A DNA stretch of 63,450 nt, the filler included, from Pelomyxa schiedti (Eukaryota; Protista; Evosea), in assembly GCA_020536535.1 (NCBI GenBank). It is 12 parts of 12 records of this genome, joined end to end, with 100 filler letters (N's around TTAATTAATTAA, not from the genome) between each part and the next. Parts side by side here need not be neighbours in the genome. Positions count along the whole stretch, not along the records: positions 19,383 to 48,047 come from JAHLWZ010001019.1; 11 more parts are not named here. The stretch is one strand, 5' to 3'. Made by a program: the position numbers and the translations under genes. Below the pieces are notes generated by a model. That model was not told the origin of the DNA, did no database searches, and saw only the letters and a program-made list of their open reading frames with translations. Shown here piece after piece: positions 19,383 through 33,000 of this stretch. Every line of letters starts with the position of its first letter. Positions within the stretch are counted from its first letter, which is position 1.

Positions 19383-20257
19383 TAAGCGTTTCGTGAAGGA
19401 TTTTTTTAAAAAAGAATTAGTTTTTGGAATGGAACCTTGTTTGTAACCAGCAGCTACTGACTGTGACCGTGTGCCACCACTGCTCAACAACAAAAACCAT
19501 CATTCACAAGGGATATAGACAATGGTTATGGTGTGTGTGTCAGTGAGTGTTGAGGTGAGAGTGAGCAAAACAGAACAAAAAGAAAACCCAGCCAACAACA
19601 AAGGACCCCTTAAAAAAAAATCTTGAAAAGAAAAGTAAACAAACAAGCCCCCTACAATAAGCCAACATCACAACACGAGAACAGAAATATGAGCAAAAAC
19701 CACTTGCTTGCCACTCATTCAGGAAAGAAAATGGAAAATTTTTTTTTTTTTTTTGCCTCATCATCTGTGCTTCTTCCTTTTTTCTTTCTTTTTTTTTTTT
19801 TCCCCCCAGCATCATTTTGTTGCTTCTTCGTAATTCGCAGCCAGCCAGAGTCTGTCTTTCTTCTTCAAAGGAAGCCACCACACCACCAAGAACAAGTGGG
19901 TCTGCTCACTACAAGATACAAAGGGGGTGTAGCTCAATTGGTAGAGCGCTCGTTTTGCATACGAGAGGCAGGGGGATCGAAACCCTCCACCTCCATTAGT
20001 CTTTTCTTCTTCTTTTCCCGTTTTTTTTAAGGGGTCCTTTGTTGTTGGCTGGGTTTTCTTTTTGTTCTGTTTTGCTCACTCTCACCTCAACACTCACTGA
20101 CACACACACCATAACCATTGTCTATATCCCTTGTGCATGATGGTTTTTGTTGTTGAGCAGTGGTGGCACACGGTCACAGTCAGTAGCTGCTGGTTACAAA
20201 CAAGGTTCCATTCCAAAAACTAATTCTTTTTTAAAAAAATCCTTCACGAAACGCTTA
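19383..20257. repeat. ~237-bp near-perfect inverted repeat (19383-19620 / 20021-20257) flanking tRNA-Ala
   Basis: The arms are reverse complements. By eye there is one substitution (CATTCAC vs CATGCAC). The left arm runs to the contig start. Confidence 0.92.
19923..19995 (+). tRNA. tRNA-Ala(TGC)
   Basis: GGGGGTG/CACCTCC acceptor stem with G3:U70; D arm GCTC..GAGC; anticodon arm CTCGT-TTTGCAT-ACGAG; T loop ATCGAAA (A54, as in eukaryotic tRNA-Ala). Confidence 0.96.
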
Positions 20258-20294
20258 ATAGTAGCCATGGCGGTCACAGCGTGGTTATGTGCCA

Positions 20295-20366
20295 TCCCTG
20301 GTAGTATAATGGCTAGTATTTTCGCCTGTCACGCGAAAGATCGGAGTTCAATCCTCCGCCAGGGAG
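20295..20366 (+). tRNA. tRNA-Asp(GTC)
   Basis: TCCCTGG/CCAGGGA acceptor; anticodon arm TTCGC-CTGTCAC-GCGAA; T loop TTCAATC; downstream T-run terminator. Confidence 0.95.
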
Positions 20367-20502
20367 AGATATCTTTTTGGGTTTTTTTTTCTTTTGTGGT
20401 GGGAATGCCACAGGCATTAAAAAATAATAGAAAATGGAGCAACATCAGCAGCAGCAGCACCCTACTAGTCCTCGTTCAGTTCACAAGCGTGTATTGTATC
20501 AA

Positions 20503-20573
20503 GCACACGTGGTTTAGGGGTATAATTCTCGCCTGCCACGCGGGAGACCCGAGTTCGATTCTCGGCGTGTGCA
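20503..20573 (+). tRNA. tRNA-Gly(GCC)
   Basis: GCACACG/CGTGTGC acceptor; anticodon arm CTCGC-CTGCCAC-GCGGG; T arm CCGAG-TTCGATT-CTCGG; downstream T-run. Confidence 0.96.
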
Positions 20574-25090: not shown

Positions 25091-26838
25091 TTAGTCCGTT
25101 GGCGGGAAGAGGGTGTGGGTATATTCACTATTCCAGTCCCGTTCGAACCTGGATAGAGCATCTTGTTGTATTGCTGGATCATTGCGGACAACCATAGTAA
25201 CCCCCGCGGTTGTTTGGAAGTAATCCGCAGTCCAGTTGTTGTTACTGATATAAACAGTGTTGTCTGTTACAAGAAATTTGGAATGGTTCACGCGAGTATA
25301 GGGTATTTGTTCGTCAATGCCGGTCATATCTGAAATAGAGTTAACTGTGGAAAAAAAGAAAAATTAAAAGTACCCGGAACAATGAACCATCTTGCAGTTA
25401 TGTTGTTGAGTGCATCAAGTGAACTTACATATTGGTACATGGCACTGTTGGTGGAGTTCCACAGTGAAACCAAAAGATTAACTTGCACTCCTCGATAAGA
25501 GGCTGCCCGTAAAGCATCGTCAATTTCGGGCCAATAATAATTGGTAGTTTGGTAAAGGGAAGCTGGTTGGTAATCCATGACTTCAATATCTAAAGAAAGC
25601 TGTCAGAGGGGAGATGACCTCATGTAAAGCTACTTATATACAGTGTGGCATTGTTTATGATATCCACTGTGGAAACGTCAGCGTGAGTACGGTGGGCTGT
25701 GCAGAATTGGGGTGGTGACATAGAAAAATACACTTCTGAAGGAGGTTGCGAATTGAATGAGACAAGTGCTGGATTTTCAGATGTGTAGGGTGTATCCACA
25801 ACAGTTGGCCACCTTCATTTATCTAAACAAAAGAGATGCAGTACTTCAGAAAATTGTACACAGATGGTATTGATCCCGTCTTTGCCACTTGCCACCACAT
25901 TTCAAACTCTTTAATTAAGTCTCCTGCCAGCTCTGGAGAGTCACGTACTAGAACGCCAAATTCTTTGACTACAGAGGGTGACTGAAGAATTTTAAACCTG
26001 TGATTGATACCTTGGGTAAGTGCACGCCAATCAGTATTGGCACTACCGACATAAAAGTGCCTTCCATCTACAATAATGAGCTTTGTGTGTAAAATCCCGT
26101 CGATCTAAATTGTAGTAACATAAGCAACTATTTTTAACAGGGGTAAAAAAGAAACACACTGGAGGGTTTAACTTTGTGAAATCAATTGACCTGACTTCTG
26201 CCACTCCTTCATTGGCCAACTTTTGCGAATCGTCATCGGGGAAACTAGAGTCAGGCTGGTTCTGCGCAAGTTATAAGCACTCGCATCCATTCTCAACCCC
26301 CGCCTCTACATCCAACATAGCCAACAAACAAAGAAATAATATCTATATACTAGCACATCGAGTATATATTTATACATAAAAAAAAAAAAAAAACCAAGAG
26401 GTACCTGGACTATTTGGACAGTGACACCCCTCTCATTATGGGCGGCCCTTATGAGCTCGTACACGTCGTAGCCCTCGTACCCACCGCACTCGGCCGGCCA
26501 CGCCATCCCGTCGGTGAGTGTCCAGTAGTATTCCGCGAACAGGATCGTCGACTTGGCGTTGCTGATCAGCCACACCCACGCGTCGTACGTGCTCGTTTCG
26601 CACGCCAGCTGCACCTGCTCCGGAATGCTCTCCACAATTTCGAATTGCCTAGTTTGGGGGTAAGCGTTTGTTGGCTTTTGGCGGGCGGAGGGAGGCGAAA
26701 GGAGAGCAAAAGGGGGTGTTGCGTATGGGTTCGGAGGTTGTGGTACGACGGTTGGTTGGCCTACGATTGACATGAGGCGAGTGGAACGACCAGGCATAGG
26801 CTTATAGCCACGGCCGTGATAACAGATCGCACGGCCAT
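25091..26838 (-). CDS. PLD3: Phospholipase D3/D4-family (PLD-nuclease type) secreted/lysosomal protein
   Basis: Signal peptide MAVRSVITAVAISLCLVVPLASC; IVESIPE; [34 protein letters not shown]; VMDYQP...YWPEIDDALRAA; PYTRVNHSKFLVTD...NNWTADYF. Confidence 0.92.
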
Positions 26839-27041
26839 TGGCTACGAGACGTGTTTTTTTTTTTGTTTCGTAGCGTCGGACCCAAGTTGGGTGTGATCGG
26901 GAGTTCCGTGAACGAGTTTTAAAAAACAGACTGATCAGATTTCCGGTTATGTGCTTGTGGAACTTTGTCTATGAGTCCAGATAGTAAGGTTGTTGCAGGT
27001 GAGTGTGGGTCTCGCTTCGTTGTGGTTGTACTACGGAAAAG

Positions 27042-29928
27042 CTAACGATGGAAGAAGTAATTCAGTGCGTGATCGGGCACGGTTTTCTCACCATGAGATA
27101 TGTGGAAGTACACCGGGATGTGGTAAGCAAAGGCCCAGCGTTTGGCCAGAGCCATTCCCTTGCGGAGCTGGCGCCTCGTGAATGAATTGTGGGACACACC
27201 GCACCTTATCAGGGTGTCGTAGTACATGTCGAGGCACTGGTCGACGTAGCGAGAGGCACAGCAGGAATCCACGAGGGACGCCAGGTCGGTGATTGGGTTC
27301 CCATAAGTCACTGTCTGCCAGTCAAACAGGCACAGTTGCGGCGGGCTGTGCCCTTTGTGCTGTTCGAGCAAGTCTGTGTTTTGTTTATTTCGCTTATTTT
27401 CATTTGCTTTTTAGGGTTTGTGTGGCTATTTTTATTATGGGTACCTGTGTCTAGGCTATTGGGGAGCAAACATAAGTTGTGTATCCAAAGATCACCTGCA
27501 AAATTGGTCAATAGGAGAACCAGTGAAAAATGACAAACCGTGCACAATGGAGTGTGGAGCCTGTGAGTGAAGCTTCTTAATTAATTTGGGAAGTTCAGTC
27601 TCATATTGCTTGCAAAAGGAGATTAGGTTAGAGCTGAATAAATGTCCACTTCTTTGGAACTTGTTAGTCTAAAACAATGACAATCAAGAAGTAAACTTTT
27701 TCCAATTGAATGCATAGAAACCCATTTTCATGACCATTTCTGCTATATTTGAAGGACTGTCAAATGGTTCCAACCACCCTACTTCAGGGTCGTCGGAATT
27801 GCCAAAGCCCTGTCATCAAATTAGTCAGTCTACAAATAAGAAAAGTTGTGCCGACAGGGTGCTCCCAGAATAATGCGTGGAATTCTGCAAGAGACTTCAC
27901 CATAAGTAACATAGTACTCAAGTCAACATCGGTTTTTCCAAACCTAGGTTTGTGCAATTAGTAAAATACTTTGTTCAGGCTACTACTCAAAGGACAGAGC
28001 ATTCTCTAAATCTTCTAGGATCTGGATACTAGATGGTGAAACAAATGCCGTTAAGTAGCACCTGGGCAAGCGTAATGAAATCTGGTGAAAAGTTTCGGAA
28101 TGGAAAGGGAATTATTTAGTACCAAACTTGGTGCCACTTTGAGGTAGAATAAGTGCTCTCTTTTGTAGTATGAAGAGAGGCAATCTTCTCGGTGTCTGTA
28201 AGGCATTTTAACAACTAACTTGTGGCTGGCAACACATCTCTCTTCCCCAGAATGCTAGTACAAATATACTTAGAATGATGAAACTTGTTTATGGGGATAC
28301 CGCGGCACAACGCAAATTGGACAGCCTAAAGACATGAGAGCGGAATCCTTTTCCACATCCGATTTTCTCGAAGTCCACATTTATAATTTTACAGTCGGGA
28401 TAGGATGATATCTGAAGGAATTTTAACACAGGTTTGGTTAACGGGTATCGGTTACATTGCCCGTGAGTAAAGAAATAACCATCTGGCAAGCGATATCAAT
28501 AAAGACAGGGCTATACAGTTTAGAAAAGTACCTGCTGACGCCCATCGTCACTATCCAGAGAACTGAAGTCCAAGAGTGGTGTACTTTCAACCACAGGAAG
28601 CAATAAATGATTAGCATTCATATATTGTAATATTTGAGGGTACTCTGCAAGGCAAGAGTGTGGGCTATGTTATATATAAAGGGGGAAACCTCTGTATACT
28701 TCAAGAAAGGCGTTCTTCTCTCTAATCATGGTGGATGATATATTCATATGAGAAGCCTCAACAACGAAGAAATGTTTATTGGCAAACCTATTACTATTAA
28801 ACTTGGCAGTTGGAACTGGAACATACATTGATTTGTCAAAGGGCATTTTAAAGTCAGATACTGTTTTACCATCTCGATTCAGTACCTGTGACTGTAAGCT
28901 CGTTCATCATCGAATTATACATACAATAATCTGATGGACAGTATCATCTGGAATAAAACCTCCAGTATCTTTGGGACCAATTCAGTTGGAACAATTGGAG
29001 TTTCACTACCTCCTCCAGAAAGTAGAAATAAATCAAAATTTCCTTTTAGTGGAAGAAAGGCCTTCCAGTCAATAAGAAGACAGAGAAAAGAGGCATACCT
29101 GATGATAATTCACTTATTTGAGCTGTTATTCTCTTGCGCATGTAGTGATACATTAGAACAGGAGCGCAGTGGTACAGTGGGTGATAACACTCAAATGTGT
29201 CAATCATCAACCAGCCACTTTTTTGGACCAGCAACTGACATAGATTGATACGGTGCTTGGACTCCAACCTACATCCATAATGGTGAATGAATCTCAAAGC
29301 GCCCTCCCTTCTACCGTGTACGTTTCAACTTTCTTGTAGCATAGTGGTTTGAACTAGGGGACATATACCCACCAATGACAGCAAACTGGAAATGGGATTG
29401 AGTTACCATACCTCAAAAAGAAAATACCCCATTCTTTGTCAGAAACGCTTTTGCTTGGTTCAGTGCATCAAGGTGTCCTATTGTTGTCACACATGTGCAC
29501 CCTCTTTTTTTTTTTTTTTTTTCAAGCATAATTATATTGAATTAATACCCACCAGGGTGTGGAGGACTGAACGTCCCAACAAAGAAAATCACAGCAGCCC
29601 TCTTATGTTCCCCAATATCCAGGGACCTCAGCTGCCCCAGGTCCAAATTATGGGTTGCAACAACGTCGTTGAGGCACCACAAATCGCAGTCACGCTCGCT
29701 CAGCACAACCTTCCAGTCGTTCCTCCCCCTCTCGATGTACTTAGATACCAGATCCTCCGACCGCCTGCTGGCAGCCCTCTCGTCCTCCTCCCAATGGGGC
29801 GGCGACCCGAAACATCGCTGGAACCCACGGAAATTCCTACGAAGTCTCGCGAAAACAACTGCAACCAAAAGCAGCGACGCAAGGCCCAAAATGCACCAGC
29901 ACAGCACCGCAACAAACGACCACCCCAT
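27042..29928 (-). CDS. Predicted fusion: N-terminal TM + NMNAT/NadD-type nucleotidyltransferase + EcKL/APH-fold small-molecule kinase
   Basis: NMNAT part: VGTFSPPHP/GHLDAL (HxGH), GGYMSP, HRINLCQL, NISSTMIRE, YPQILQYMNANHL. Kinase part: LVVKMP...KREHLFY...LPRCY...ILEDL...LAEFHA...VH/GDLWIHN...LFDWQ...GNPITDLA. The two are joined in frame via GT-AG introns 28531-28483 and 28455-28412. Confidence 0.8.
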
Positions 29929-30035
29929 CGGCCCAAATCACGAAACTTGAAGGTTACGGGAAACGAACTTGTTACAAAAAAAAGGGCTGAACAAAAAAAA
30001 AATACTCTTGATTGCTTGGAGGTATGGGCACACGT

Positions 30036-33000
30036 TTAACCAATAAAGAGGTTAACATTGCCTTCCTCTGCTGCTGCAAGGTACATAGCCACACCTCCAA
30101 TTTCCACACCATCGATGAGCTCCTCCTTTGCAACACCAAGAAGCTCCATTGCCATGCTGCAGGCAATGAACCGCACGCCGGCTTGCTTCGCGTTGTCGAT
30201 GAGCTCCTCAAGGGTGGCGACTTTGTGCATGGCCATCACGTTCTTCACCATTGTCCCGCCGAGTCCAAAGAAGTTCATCTTGCTCATTGCTCCTGGTCCG
30301 GCTGGAAGCATGTATCCAAACATGGAGTCCAACCACCCTTTCTTCACGGACACGGGTGTAATCTTACTCCTGGTTGTTTGTATGTAGTCAGTAAAACTAA
30401 GTCGAAGATATGGAGAATGATTACTTGATTACAGTAAGACCCCAGAACGTGAAGAACATAGTAACTTGGCTGCCCATTGCTGCGGCACCATTGGCAATGA
30501 TGAATGCAGCCATCACTGAAAGGGAGTTAGGAACGAAAAGGTAAATTCAATAGTACCTTTGTCAAAATCATTTGAGAATACTACAATTGTCTTCTTTTTG
30601 GAAGATATCCCGAGGGGCATATCAGGAAGAGATTGAAGAGCTGCTGCGGCTGAAGATGATGAGGTGGCAGTTGTCATTACAGCTCCAGCAGACCGCGCCG
30701 CACTTTGAGCAGCACTTGGACCTTTGTGAATAACTGCACGATGACCGTCCTTTGTTTTATCAAGGCTCAACAAGGAATTGCCGGTGCTCCGACACCAAGC
30801 AGGGAGGTCGTGTGCGAAGCCGCCGTCACTTGCTGTGATCGCAAGGCATTGCCCAAAGTTGAGATGAGATAATTCTTGGGCAAGTTTGAGTATGGGACCA
30901 GGGCACTGCATTCCCGTGGCATCAACCTATTTACTCATCAGAGAAACTTAGATAGTGAACAAGAAGCAAACCTCTTTTACAACAGTGACTGGTTCGGTAG
31001 GTGCCGCCGCAGAAGCTGATGTGAGTGGTTCTTGTGGTGTCTCAATAATTATCCCCTTTCGGATTGTTGCTCGGGTGCCCTGTGTAACCTGTTCCAACTT
31101 GACGAGGGTGTTCCCTGTACTTCGACACCAAACAGGAATGTCATTTTGGAAACTCGGATCACTGGCTGTCACTATAACAGTATCGCCAGGGTCCATGGTT
31201 GAAAAAGCTCTGGATGTTCGTATTATGGGAATAGGGCACTTGAGTCCAACTGCATCAATCTTCAAATGAATTAAGGTACGTTTTCATAGCCTCTTGCATA
31301 CCTCCTGTGGTGGTTTGGTGGAAACAACAACACCACCATTCACTTGAGACGAGGAAACTACTACACCAGAGGCAGACACGGAGCAAGAATCCGTGGTTGC
31401 CACATGGGTACCAACTACAGATTTCATCTTTCGAGCGTTAGAAGTCACCATACGACAGGGGGTACTTTACCCATTTCTTTGCGCCATTATCAGTAACAGT
31501 TACCCAAGTGCGGAAACCACCACTGAGATTAACAGCATTAAAACCTTTGTTGCAAAGAAGCCTAGTTGCATTGTATGACCTCAATCCAGTTCCGCATGCA
31601 ACAATGATCGTTCTGTCACGGGGAAGCTCATGTAACCGGGTTTGAAGTTCGGGTAAAGGAATATTGATGGAATTAATGATTTTCCCGCCAAACAACTCCT
31701 GGAGAACAGTGTAAAACAACAAGAAAAAAAATAAACTTGGCATACCTCTGGCTGCCGCACATCAAGGACAAATGTTTGGTGGACTTTAGCTTCATCATAC
31801 AATAGAGCCTTCAGTTCTTCAGCATGAATCTGGTTAAACTCCCCACGCAACAGATTGCTTGCAATAAAGCCAGCCATATTGACTGGATCTTTCGCGCTAC
31901 CGTAGGGCCTATACCATGACAGTGAGAAAGAAGAAAGATCTTGCAGAAAAGATTACGGTGCGTAGCAAAGTTCCAAGTCTTCCAAATCGAAGACAGTCAT
32001 ATGAGACCTAATGGCGACTGCCACTACATCAATTCTCTTGTCAACACCTTCACGTCCAAAGGCTTGAGCACCCAAAATTCGACCTAAAAAGTATTTGGTG
32101 TGGGTATGATATGAAGTACGGGAATTAAGCTGACCATCGGATGGATCGTACACCAATTTCATTGAAAGCATCTGCCCACCTATAATATATAAGCAAGGAG
32201 AGGAGAGCGACAAAAATACCAGGGTAATAGGAAGCGTGGTGCATTCCATGTGTGTACACCTTGTTGTACTGTCTATTTATCCTCTTCAGGGTTTTCTCGT
32301 TTTCACCTGTCATGGCGATTGTCATCCCAAAAACTTTGCAGACGGCGGTTCCCTATAACAATCAGCTCACTCATATAGTGGATTACCAAATTACTTGAGT
32401 GTTTTTGTACGTTAGTTTCTTCCCCTCAGTAAATAAGTTTGTTCCAACAATCCTTCCTTGCCTGTTGGCTGGTCCTGCCAACGGAATAAGAGTTTGAAAA
32501 CCTCCTATGTAGTCCTTCACCTACACAATCATGAAAAATCTTGCGTGGCTAAGAGTGCACACCTCAATAGCATCACCCACAGCATAGACGGATGGTGCAG
32601 ATGTCTCCAAATATTCATCGACAAGTATACCGCCACGTTCCCCGAGCTTGATGCCTGAGAGACGTCAATGCATGTAAGTCACTCAAAAAACGGCAACAGA
32701 CCAGCTTGCTTGGCGAGAGTTACTTCTGGCCGTACTCCAATGGCAACAACAGCAAAAGAACACATAACTTCCTCGCCGGTAGTCAGCTTGGCTATTACGT
32801 GCTACATAGATTAATACCTAACTTGGGGATAGAAAATTCATACATTGTCAGCCCCAGTAAAAGATGCAACAGTGCAACTTAAACGGAGGTCAACGCCTTG
32901 TTGAACCAACTCTTGATGCAACGGGTGTGTCATTTCTGGATCGGCAGCAACCATAACTTGATCTGCGAATTCAACCAGCATGCAAGGTAATTTTTGATCA

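Follow-up and report, generated by a model that had tools for sequence, protein, structure and literature searches.

A spliced gene of the amoeba Pelomyxa schiedti encodes an NMNAT-like domain fused to an EcKL/APH-fold kinase

The gene described here lies on the minus strand at positions 29928-27042 of a 63,450-nucleotide (nt) stretch of DNA from the amoeba Pelomyxa schiedti (the window; assembly GCA_020536535.1), to which all coordinates refer unless stated otherwise. It is a single gene of 18 exons, and its 17 introns, all GT-AG, measure 39-75 nt (mean 48). When the minus strand was translated in three frames, it showed an open reading frame (ORF) starting with an ATG at 29928 and a final exon running to a stop at 27044-27042. 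The spliced translation of 691 amino acids (aa) is identical, residue for residue, to GenBank entry KAH3743103.1, hypothetical protein Pelo_15497 of P. schiedti. The exon model was assembled from coordinates, and the identical database protein (P0001) was used for the profile and homology searches. Pelo_15497 is a fused polypeptide, almost certainly a single one, with an N-terminal hydrophobic helix, an NMNAT/NadD-type domain at about aa 108-320 and, after a short linker, an EcKL/APH-fold kinase at about aa 350-691. The original prediction, made from the DNA alone, had placed an NMNAT-like domain and an EcKL kinase in one gene. This was supported by splice joints in RNA, by the identity to the annotated protein and by at least seven further genes carrying the same fusion.

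The two enzyme halves meet at intron 9 (28483-28531, 49 nt, GT donor at 28531), exon 10 (28456-28482, aa 339-347) and intron 10 (28412-28455, 44 nt). Exon 10 is a 27-nt micro-exon that starts with an ATG and joins the NMNAT-like frame to the kinase frame, in frame throughout. All three elements had been predicted at exactly these positions. If intron 9 were left unspliced, the NMNAT-like frame would end at the TAA that it carries (28522-28520), 37 nt before the ATG at 28482; the gap had been put at about 35 nt. RNA evidence came from X1-X3, three runs of single-cell RNA-seq that carry the label 'protist metagenome' and were made from one sample. A fourth run of the same study (X4) contains the whole stretch and is probably the source of the DNA. 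We counted the runs as one source. The contigs, which have a depth of about 5x and drop minor forms, were aligned over 25800-31300. The joints 28482->28532 (skipping 49 nt) and 28411->28456 (skipping 44 nt) were present in X1, X2 and X3, and absent from the DNA run. Record 2 of X1 links exon 11 of the kinase, by way of the micro-exon, to exons 9 and 8.

These joints bear on the possibility that two separate genes, one ending with the TAA at 28520 and the other starting with the ATG at 28482, are fused only by read-through or operon trans-splicing. The in-frame stop lies 12 nt into intron 9, the gap is short, and the micro-exon opens precisely with the ATG, directly preceded by an AG; all of this would suit two genes. 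Splicing across the gap is nevertheless in cis in all three RNA runs, and the RNA contig alignment showed no poly-A or leader-like loose ends between 28482 and 28531. Moreover, relatives of the protein are fused in uninterrupted ORFs, without a Met at the position where the micro-exon starts. We consider a two-gene arrangement extremely improbable. The same RNA evidence led us to drop the idea of an operon in which a spliced leader is trans-spliced at the AG preceding this ATG.

The kinase block (27042-28411) consists of exons 11-15 (28411-28301, 28254-28123, 28081-27987, 27943-27856 and 27809-27697) and exons 16-18 (27651-27539, 27495-27445 and 27373-27042). All seven introns within it were spliced out in the RNA contigs. 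At position 27595 in exon 16, the plus-strand base is T in the DNA and C in record 1 of X1. The mismatch comes from one contig with a depth of 6 and could reflect an allele, an error or editing.

The NMNAT-like half is encoded by exons 1-9. Exon 1 (29553-29928, aa 1-125) contains the N-terminal extension and the first part of the NMNAT fold, as far as the HPG of HPGH, a motif that intron 1 (29478-29552) splits between G and H. The start of exon 1 is forced, having a stop just upstream, the only in-frame Met, and the poly-A site of the neighbouring gene about 63 nt upstream. RNA covers only the final 14 nt of this exon, joined to exon 2 (29428-29477, aa 126-142). These 14 nt form a loose end at 29478 in record 3 of X1 and agree with the last letters of exon 1, so that intron 1 is spliced there. 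Intron 2 (29386-29427) separates exon 2 from exon 3 (29315-29385), which carries the Y-x-S-P motif and K-L and whose donor was set by alignment of homologues. Beyond intron 3 (29269-29314), exon 4 (29099-29268) holds the H-R and D-x-x-E region; searched alone, it gave NMNATs as its best PDB matches (E = 0.017).

Exon 5 (29010-29042) ends in LLSGG and is followed by intron 5 (28969-29009, 41 nt). Keeping this intron leads to a frameshift and a stop. Its removal gives LLSGG-D-TGGF with G232-x-D234, and it must be removed because the reading frame and the invariant D234 require it. An altered CGAD motif, 'LLSGGGSE', had been proposed at this place; it proved to be an artefact of reading through the 41-nt intron, and after splicing the motif is the customary G-x-D. 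Exon 6 (28925-28968) and exon 7 (28827-28885) come next. Intron 7 (28788-28826, 39 nt, in frame) was revealed by the RNA, in which it is spliced (joint 28785->28825, cut +2, in X1 and X2). Exon 8 (28690-28787) encodes the ISSTxIR motif and Y299. Intron 8 (28645-28689, 45 nt) would introduce a stop at 28672-28670 if kept, and its removal is required by the Y-x-x-aromatic-P spacing of the relatives. Exon 9 (28532-28644) encodes the C-terminal NMNAT helix and the linker, with the YPQILQYM motif. The NMNAT-like frame as first read was therefore right in its motifs (HPGH, ISSTMIR and YPQILQYM are all present), but it had overlooked the introns at 28969-29009 and 28788-28826.

Two features of the gene structure are recorded as side observations. 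Read through from its start, intron 8 encodes G-F-P-L-Y-I-stop, which mimics the family sequence aromatic-P-Q-I-(I/L)-Q-Y, encoded by exon 9 (28620-28644: E-Y-P-Q-I-L-Q-Y). The mimicry could be due to chance or to a small duplication, or it could belong to an isoform that retains the intron and so terminates an NMNAT-only protein. There is also a sharp compositional contrast inside this one gene, the GC content being 0.56 in both long terminal exons (29553-29928 and 27042-27373) as compared with 0.30-0.46 in the 16 internal exons and 0.36 in the introns.

Part of the RNA evidence counts against a productive fusion transcript. Record 3 of X1 is contiguous over 29306-29478 and keeps intron 2 together with part of intron 3. 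Record 2 of X1 is contiguous over 28532-28785, keeping intron 8, and, by depth arithmetic, over 28928-29025, keeping intron 5. Each of these four retained introns of the NMNAT part brings a stop or a frameshift. None of the RNA contigs of X1-X3 carried the fully spliced 2076-nt ORF, and all the RNA derives from a single sample in a single study. Together with the nearly missing RNA cover of exon 1, the retained introns could indicate a non-productive or decaying copy, whose NMNAT part is not translated as a fusion or which yields mainly truncated products. The ORF is, however, intact over 18 exons with all catalytic residues kept, and the contigs concerned have lost their remaining introns, as expected of pre-mRNA in low-depth single-cell libraries. 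We regard a decaying copy as very improbable. The retained introns look like partly processed RNA, and regulated retention of the NMNAT-part introns is possible.

To characterize the fused protein, its domains were compared with profile and structure databases. Searches with the CTP_transf_like, EcKL and APH profiles had been suggested, and all three exceeded their Pfam cut-offs on the spliced protein. CTP_transf_like (PF01467) scored 47.1 bits against a cut-off of 21 over aa 115-292. In an alignment of five fused family members (A1), the H124-P-G-H127 motif and residues S286, I289 and R290 were invariant, as were G232 and D234. A profile of the N domain searched against the PDB matched NMNAT/NaMNAT only, the best match being Arabidopsis thaliana 9rpk (5.3e-17, full length). 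The AlphaFold model of the N domain had a mean predicted local distance difference test (pLDDT) value of 72, and its top 50 Foldseek matches in the PDB were all NMNAT/NadD, with template modelling (TM) scores of 0.5-0.74. No PPAT, CCT/ECT, FMNAT or HldE-type protein occurred among the PDB profile matches or the top 50 Foldseek matches. At two positions aligned to Trp residues of the A. thaliana enzyme, Phe/Tyr replaces Trp, so that the aromatic character (F/Y/W) is kept. Pfam searches with single NMNAT exons gave no matches, and a six-frame search of the genome with PF01467 did not flag the fusion locus because its exons are too short.

The kinase half was matched by the Pfam families EcKL (PF02958; 53.1 bits against a cut-off of 22, 4e-14) and APH (PF01636; 26.7 against 23.2). 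The last exon alone gave an EcKL match at 6.9e-5, and the kinase also matched DUF1679. As predicted, the kinase is complete with its catalytic motifs: K400, E417, LED at 450-452, HGD at 564-566, N571 and DWQ at 599-601. Residues N235, D263, W264 and Q265 (domain numbering) were invariant across 12 sequences. The structural model (pLDDT 82, predicted TM score 0.86) yielded 355 PDB matches at E <= 0.001 in Foldseek, and the best 50 of these 355 were all of the APH, ChoK, LicA or PsiK type. The fold is thus the generic APH/choline-kinase one, at a TM score of about 0.5. A PDB search with the single kinase sequence gave no match. With a profile of the domain, the closest structure was the kinase domain of ACAD11 (4.9e-5), followed by fructosamine-3-kinase (FN3K) and PsiK. 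Judged from motifs and model, this is a divergent kinase of the APH/EcKL fold, and both catalytic centres of the fused protein are predicted to be intact. To our knowledge, the substrates of the EcKL/APH-fold family are almost all unknown outside insects.

The N-terminal hydrophobic helix (29851-29919, minus strand; aa 4-26) is a putative signal anchor, followed directly by an R-rich flank of four Arg residues. Its maximum Kyte-Doolittle value over 19 residues was 2.81 at aa 8-26, versus 0.93-1.51 in four relatives. A membrane-tethering helix had been proposed at this end of the protein. The hydrophobic segment is real, but it is confined to the Pelo_15497 paralogue and absent from the four relatives; membrane tethering is therefore no property of the family. 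With positive charges on its C-terminal side, the helix would hold Pelo_15497 on the cytosolic face of a membrane.

When 1.84 billion representative sequences were searched exhaustively with the last exon, phmmer returned 16 matches at E <= 0.001, which implies that the kinase subfamily is small. Six of the matches were longer than 500 aa, and four of these six have an NMNAT-like N-terminal half (P0001, P0003, P0007 and P0008). P0003 (Pelo_10954, 618 aa) and P0007 (Pelo_3998, 631 aa, on another contig of the assembly, C310, as locus L009) are paralogues in the P. schiedti genome, and the three P. schiedti fusion proteins share 33-43% identity. Pfam detected CTP_transf_like together with EcKL/APH in P0001, P0003 and P0007, and in P0008 (567 aa) only the kinase half passed the threshold. 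P0017 (585 aa), from a JGI metagenome and in the same cluster as P0008, matched TIGR00482 at its N end and EcKL in its C half; its source names it NaMN adenylyltransferase. P0020 (584 aa), with CTP_transf_like and EcKL among its precomputed families, comes from a different organism. It is encoded by one uninterrupted ORF on a 1870-nt transcript-like contig of another run, and its genomic copies (L014 and L015) are broken by short introns. This combination provides independent evidence of a fused mRNA in another organism. A scan of metagenomes added three further collinear fusion loci with introns (L018, L026 and L030). Among bacterial and archaeal genomes, one per species, we found two weak NadD-like matches and no fusion, and none of the large clusters of the ESM Atlas contained both domains. 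The fusion thus forms a small family, seen so far in eukaryotes only.

Conservation in A1 extends over both halves. The invariant positions include GxFxPxHPGH, YxSP, K-L, H-R, DxxE, GxD and ISSTxIR in the transferase, and K400, E417, L-E-D, H482, HGDxxxxN, D-W-Q and D611 in the kinase. The last column of the alignment is an invariant C-terminal Arg in all five fused proteins, preceded by K, R, N or H (endings HR, RR, NR, KR and NR). None of these endings is a classical peroxisomal targeting signal (PTS1). The invariant Arg could be a conserved signal or a structural residue.

Other genes of the same genome bear on the role of the fusion. A stand-alone NMNAT-like gene (L006, G000:C133:9584-12820) ends right after the C-terminal NMNAT helix, and matches to NAD kinase, NAD synthase and QPRT were found. 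NAPRTase and NAMPT were not detected in an exon-by-exon search of the incomplete single-cell assembly. Given this gap and the separate NMNAT, riboside salvage would supply a missing route. As a side observation, a further EcKL match in this genome (L011, C171) lies in a 483-aa open frame that had no tblastn match from five fusion proteins.

We propose the following scheme for Pelo_15497. The kinase would phosphorylate the 5'-OH of a pyridine riboside, either nicotinamide riboside (NR) or nicotinate riboside (NaR). The adjoining domain would then move AMP from ATP onto the mononucleotide, giving nicotinamide adenine dinucleotide (NAD) or nicotinate adenine dinucleotide (NaAD). Overall, this would amount to NadR-like two-step salvage with a non-P-loop kinase. 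That the two domains would catalyse consecutive steps is inferred by analogy. Riboside phosphorylation followed by adenylylation is the likeliest scheme because the transferase is of the NMNAT type by fold and sequence, and because it follows the logic of NadR and RibF. The restriction of the N-domain matches to NMNAT/NadD also favours a pyridine mononucleotide over substrates of the choline or ethanolamine type. An acceptor of the nicotinamide mononucleotide/nicotinate mononucleotide (NMN/NaMN) type has, in our estimate, slightly better than even chances. The complete two-step riboside salvage by the fused enzyme is put forward tentatively, at somewhat below even chances.

Several findings argue against this scheme. 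The equivalog cut-off of TIGR00482 (112.45 bits) was not reached by P0001 (58.8) or its relatives (36-62), and the loop that follows G-x-D lacks about seven residues relative to the matched NMNAT structures. The acceptor may therefore differ from NMN/NaMN, and the N domain would represent a divergent subfamily whose function is not assured to be that of NMNAT/NadD. We know of no riboside kinase with an APH/EcKL fold, and none was found in a literature search. The three paralogues are so diverged that diversification of their substrates is a better match than a step of housekeeping metabolism. Finally, the missing NAPRTase and NAMPT are a weak absence in view of the search described above. The fusion may thus be real and act on a different alcohol, the kinase making an X-phosphate and the NMNAT-like domain an ADP-X from a metabolite, sugar or xenobiotic, outside NAD metabolism. 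Such a role would agree with the low equivalog score and the shortened loop on the substrate side, with the very diverse alcohols on which EcKL/APH relatives act, with the three diverged paralogues in one genome and with the stand-alone NMNAT already present there. It is harder to reconcile with the N-domain matches, all of them NMNAT/NadD among the PDB profile matches and the top 50 in Foldseek, and with the invariance of NMNAT-specific motifs beyond HxGH and ISSTxxR. On balance, a different alcohol seems somewhat unlikely.

The order of the two reactions was also considered. As in CoA synthase, where PPAT acts before DPCK, NAD or NaAD could be made first and then be phosphorylated by the kinase to a product resembling NADP or nicotinic acid adenine dinucleotide phosphate (NAADP). 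The sequence does not fix the reaction order, and both domain orders and both reaction orders occur among transferase-kinase fusions (COASY, RibF, HldE and NadR). The genome, however, already has NAD kinase matches, and we know of no dinucleotide kinase with an APH fold. We judge this reversed order rather improbable. More generally, a product that has so far been assigned to no enzyme of this type, such as an ADP-linked metabolite or a phosphorylated dinucleotide, e.g. NAADP from NaAD, is unlikely. Were the product novel, substrate use would have diverged among the three Pelomyxa paralogues.

The surroundings of the gene yielded some further side observations. The upstream neighbour (30036-31265, minus strand) has several exons and encodes two TusA domains together with one DsrE/DsrF/DrsH-like domain (Pfam 4.5e-20, 2.1e-14 and 1.5e-30). 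The depth of its RNA contigs exceeds that of the fusion gene's contigs 10-30 times, and its poly-A site lies near 29991-29993. Such a sulfur-relay fusion of bacterial style, found in an anaerobic amoeba, possibly goes back to lateral transfer. In the downstream neighbour (minus strand; 25968-26160 and 26306-26797), introns 25969-26010 and 26105-26159 are spliced. The 163-aa ORF at 26306-26797 had no Pfam match, and RNA cover was zero between 26536 and 26903. Farther away, three tRNA genes (Ala-TGC, Asp-GTC and Gly-GCC) stand within 650 nt at 19923-20573 on the plus strand.

The sequence and the fused gene model were already public as a hypothetical protein, and the concept of kinase-nucleotidyltransferase fusions is well known; the novelty lies in how the gene is read, not in the gene itself. 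The literature searched, including the Pelomyxa genome paper and its supplements, mentions neither the protein nor the NMNAT-EcKL architecture. In line with the original prediction, our searches brought up no characterised protein of this architecture. Where a kinase and an HxGH nucleotidyltransferase are fused, as in NadR, RibF, HldE and CoA synthase, the fusion reliably points to two consecutive steps in the synthesis of a cofactor or nucleotide sugar. The present fusion thereby gives an orphan EcKL kinase a testable substrate hypothesis, NR or NaR. The EcKL domain may represent a new, non-P-loop class of pyridine-riboside kinase. For anaerobic amoebae living with prokaryotic symbionts, the fusion may bring to light a riboside kinase of non-orthologous origin or an adenylylated metabolite that is new.

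Each half of Pelo_15497 resembles known enzymes. The N domain shares its fold with eukaryotic NMNATs (A. thaliana NaMNAT 9rpk/9rpm, Chaetomium thermophilum 9iw1 and human NMNAT1-3) and with bacterial NadD, along with the motifs GxFxPxHxGH, SPxxxxY, HR, DxxE, GxD and ISSTxIR. Unlike these enzymes, to which it is only about 20% identical, it is fused to a kinase, and ahead of it stand the hydrophobic helix and an extension some 100 aa long. With the EcKL, CHK-like and DUF1679 kinases, which include the insect ecdysteroid 22-kinase family, and with ACAD10/11, the kinase half has in common the Lys-Glu pair, HGDxxxxN and the metal-binding Asp of D-W-Q. It is very divergent from the EcKL and ACAD11 kinases and differs from them in its fusion to an NMNAT-like domain.

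As a whole, the protein is most readily compared with bacterial NadR, the NMN adenylyltransferase and ribosylnicotinamide kinase. In both, one polypeptide carries an HxGH adenylyltransferase followed by a kinase. NadR has a P-loop kinase and an N-terminal helix-turn-helix domain. The kinase of Pelo_15497, in contrast, is of the APH/EcKL type by Pfam and by fold, the helix-turn-helix is absent, and no NadR model was matched in NCBIfam. The likeness to NadR is hence one of analogy, not of membership. A kinase is also paired with an HxGH or other nucleotidyltransferase, for the activation of a small metabolite, in the bifunctional FAD synthetase RibF/RibC, HldE, CoA synthase (PPAT-DPCK) and LicA/LicC. 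RibF and COASY have the same order as Pelo_15497, with the transferase N-terminal and the kinase C-terminal, and LicA is among the best 50 of the 355 fold matches of the kinase. These systems differ from Pelo_15497 in using other kinase folds (riboflavin kinase, ribokinase or P-loop) or separate proteins (LicA/LicC), and in having transferases of other subfamilies that act on other substrates.

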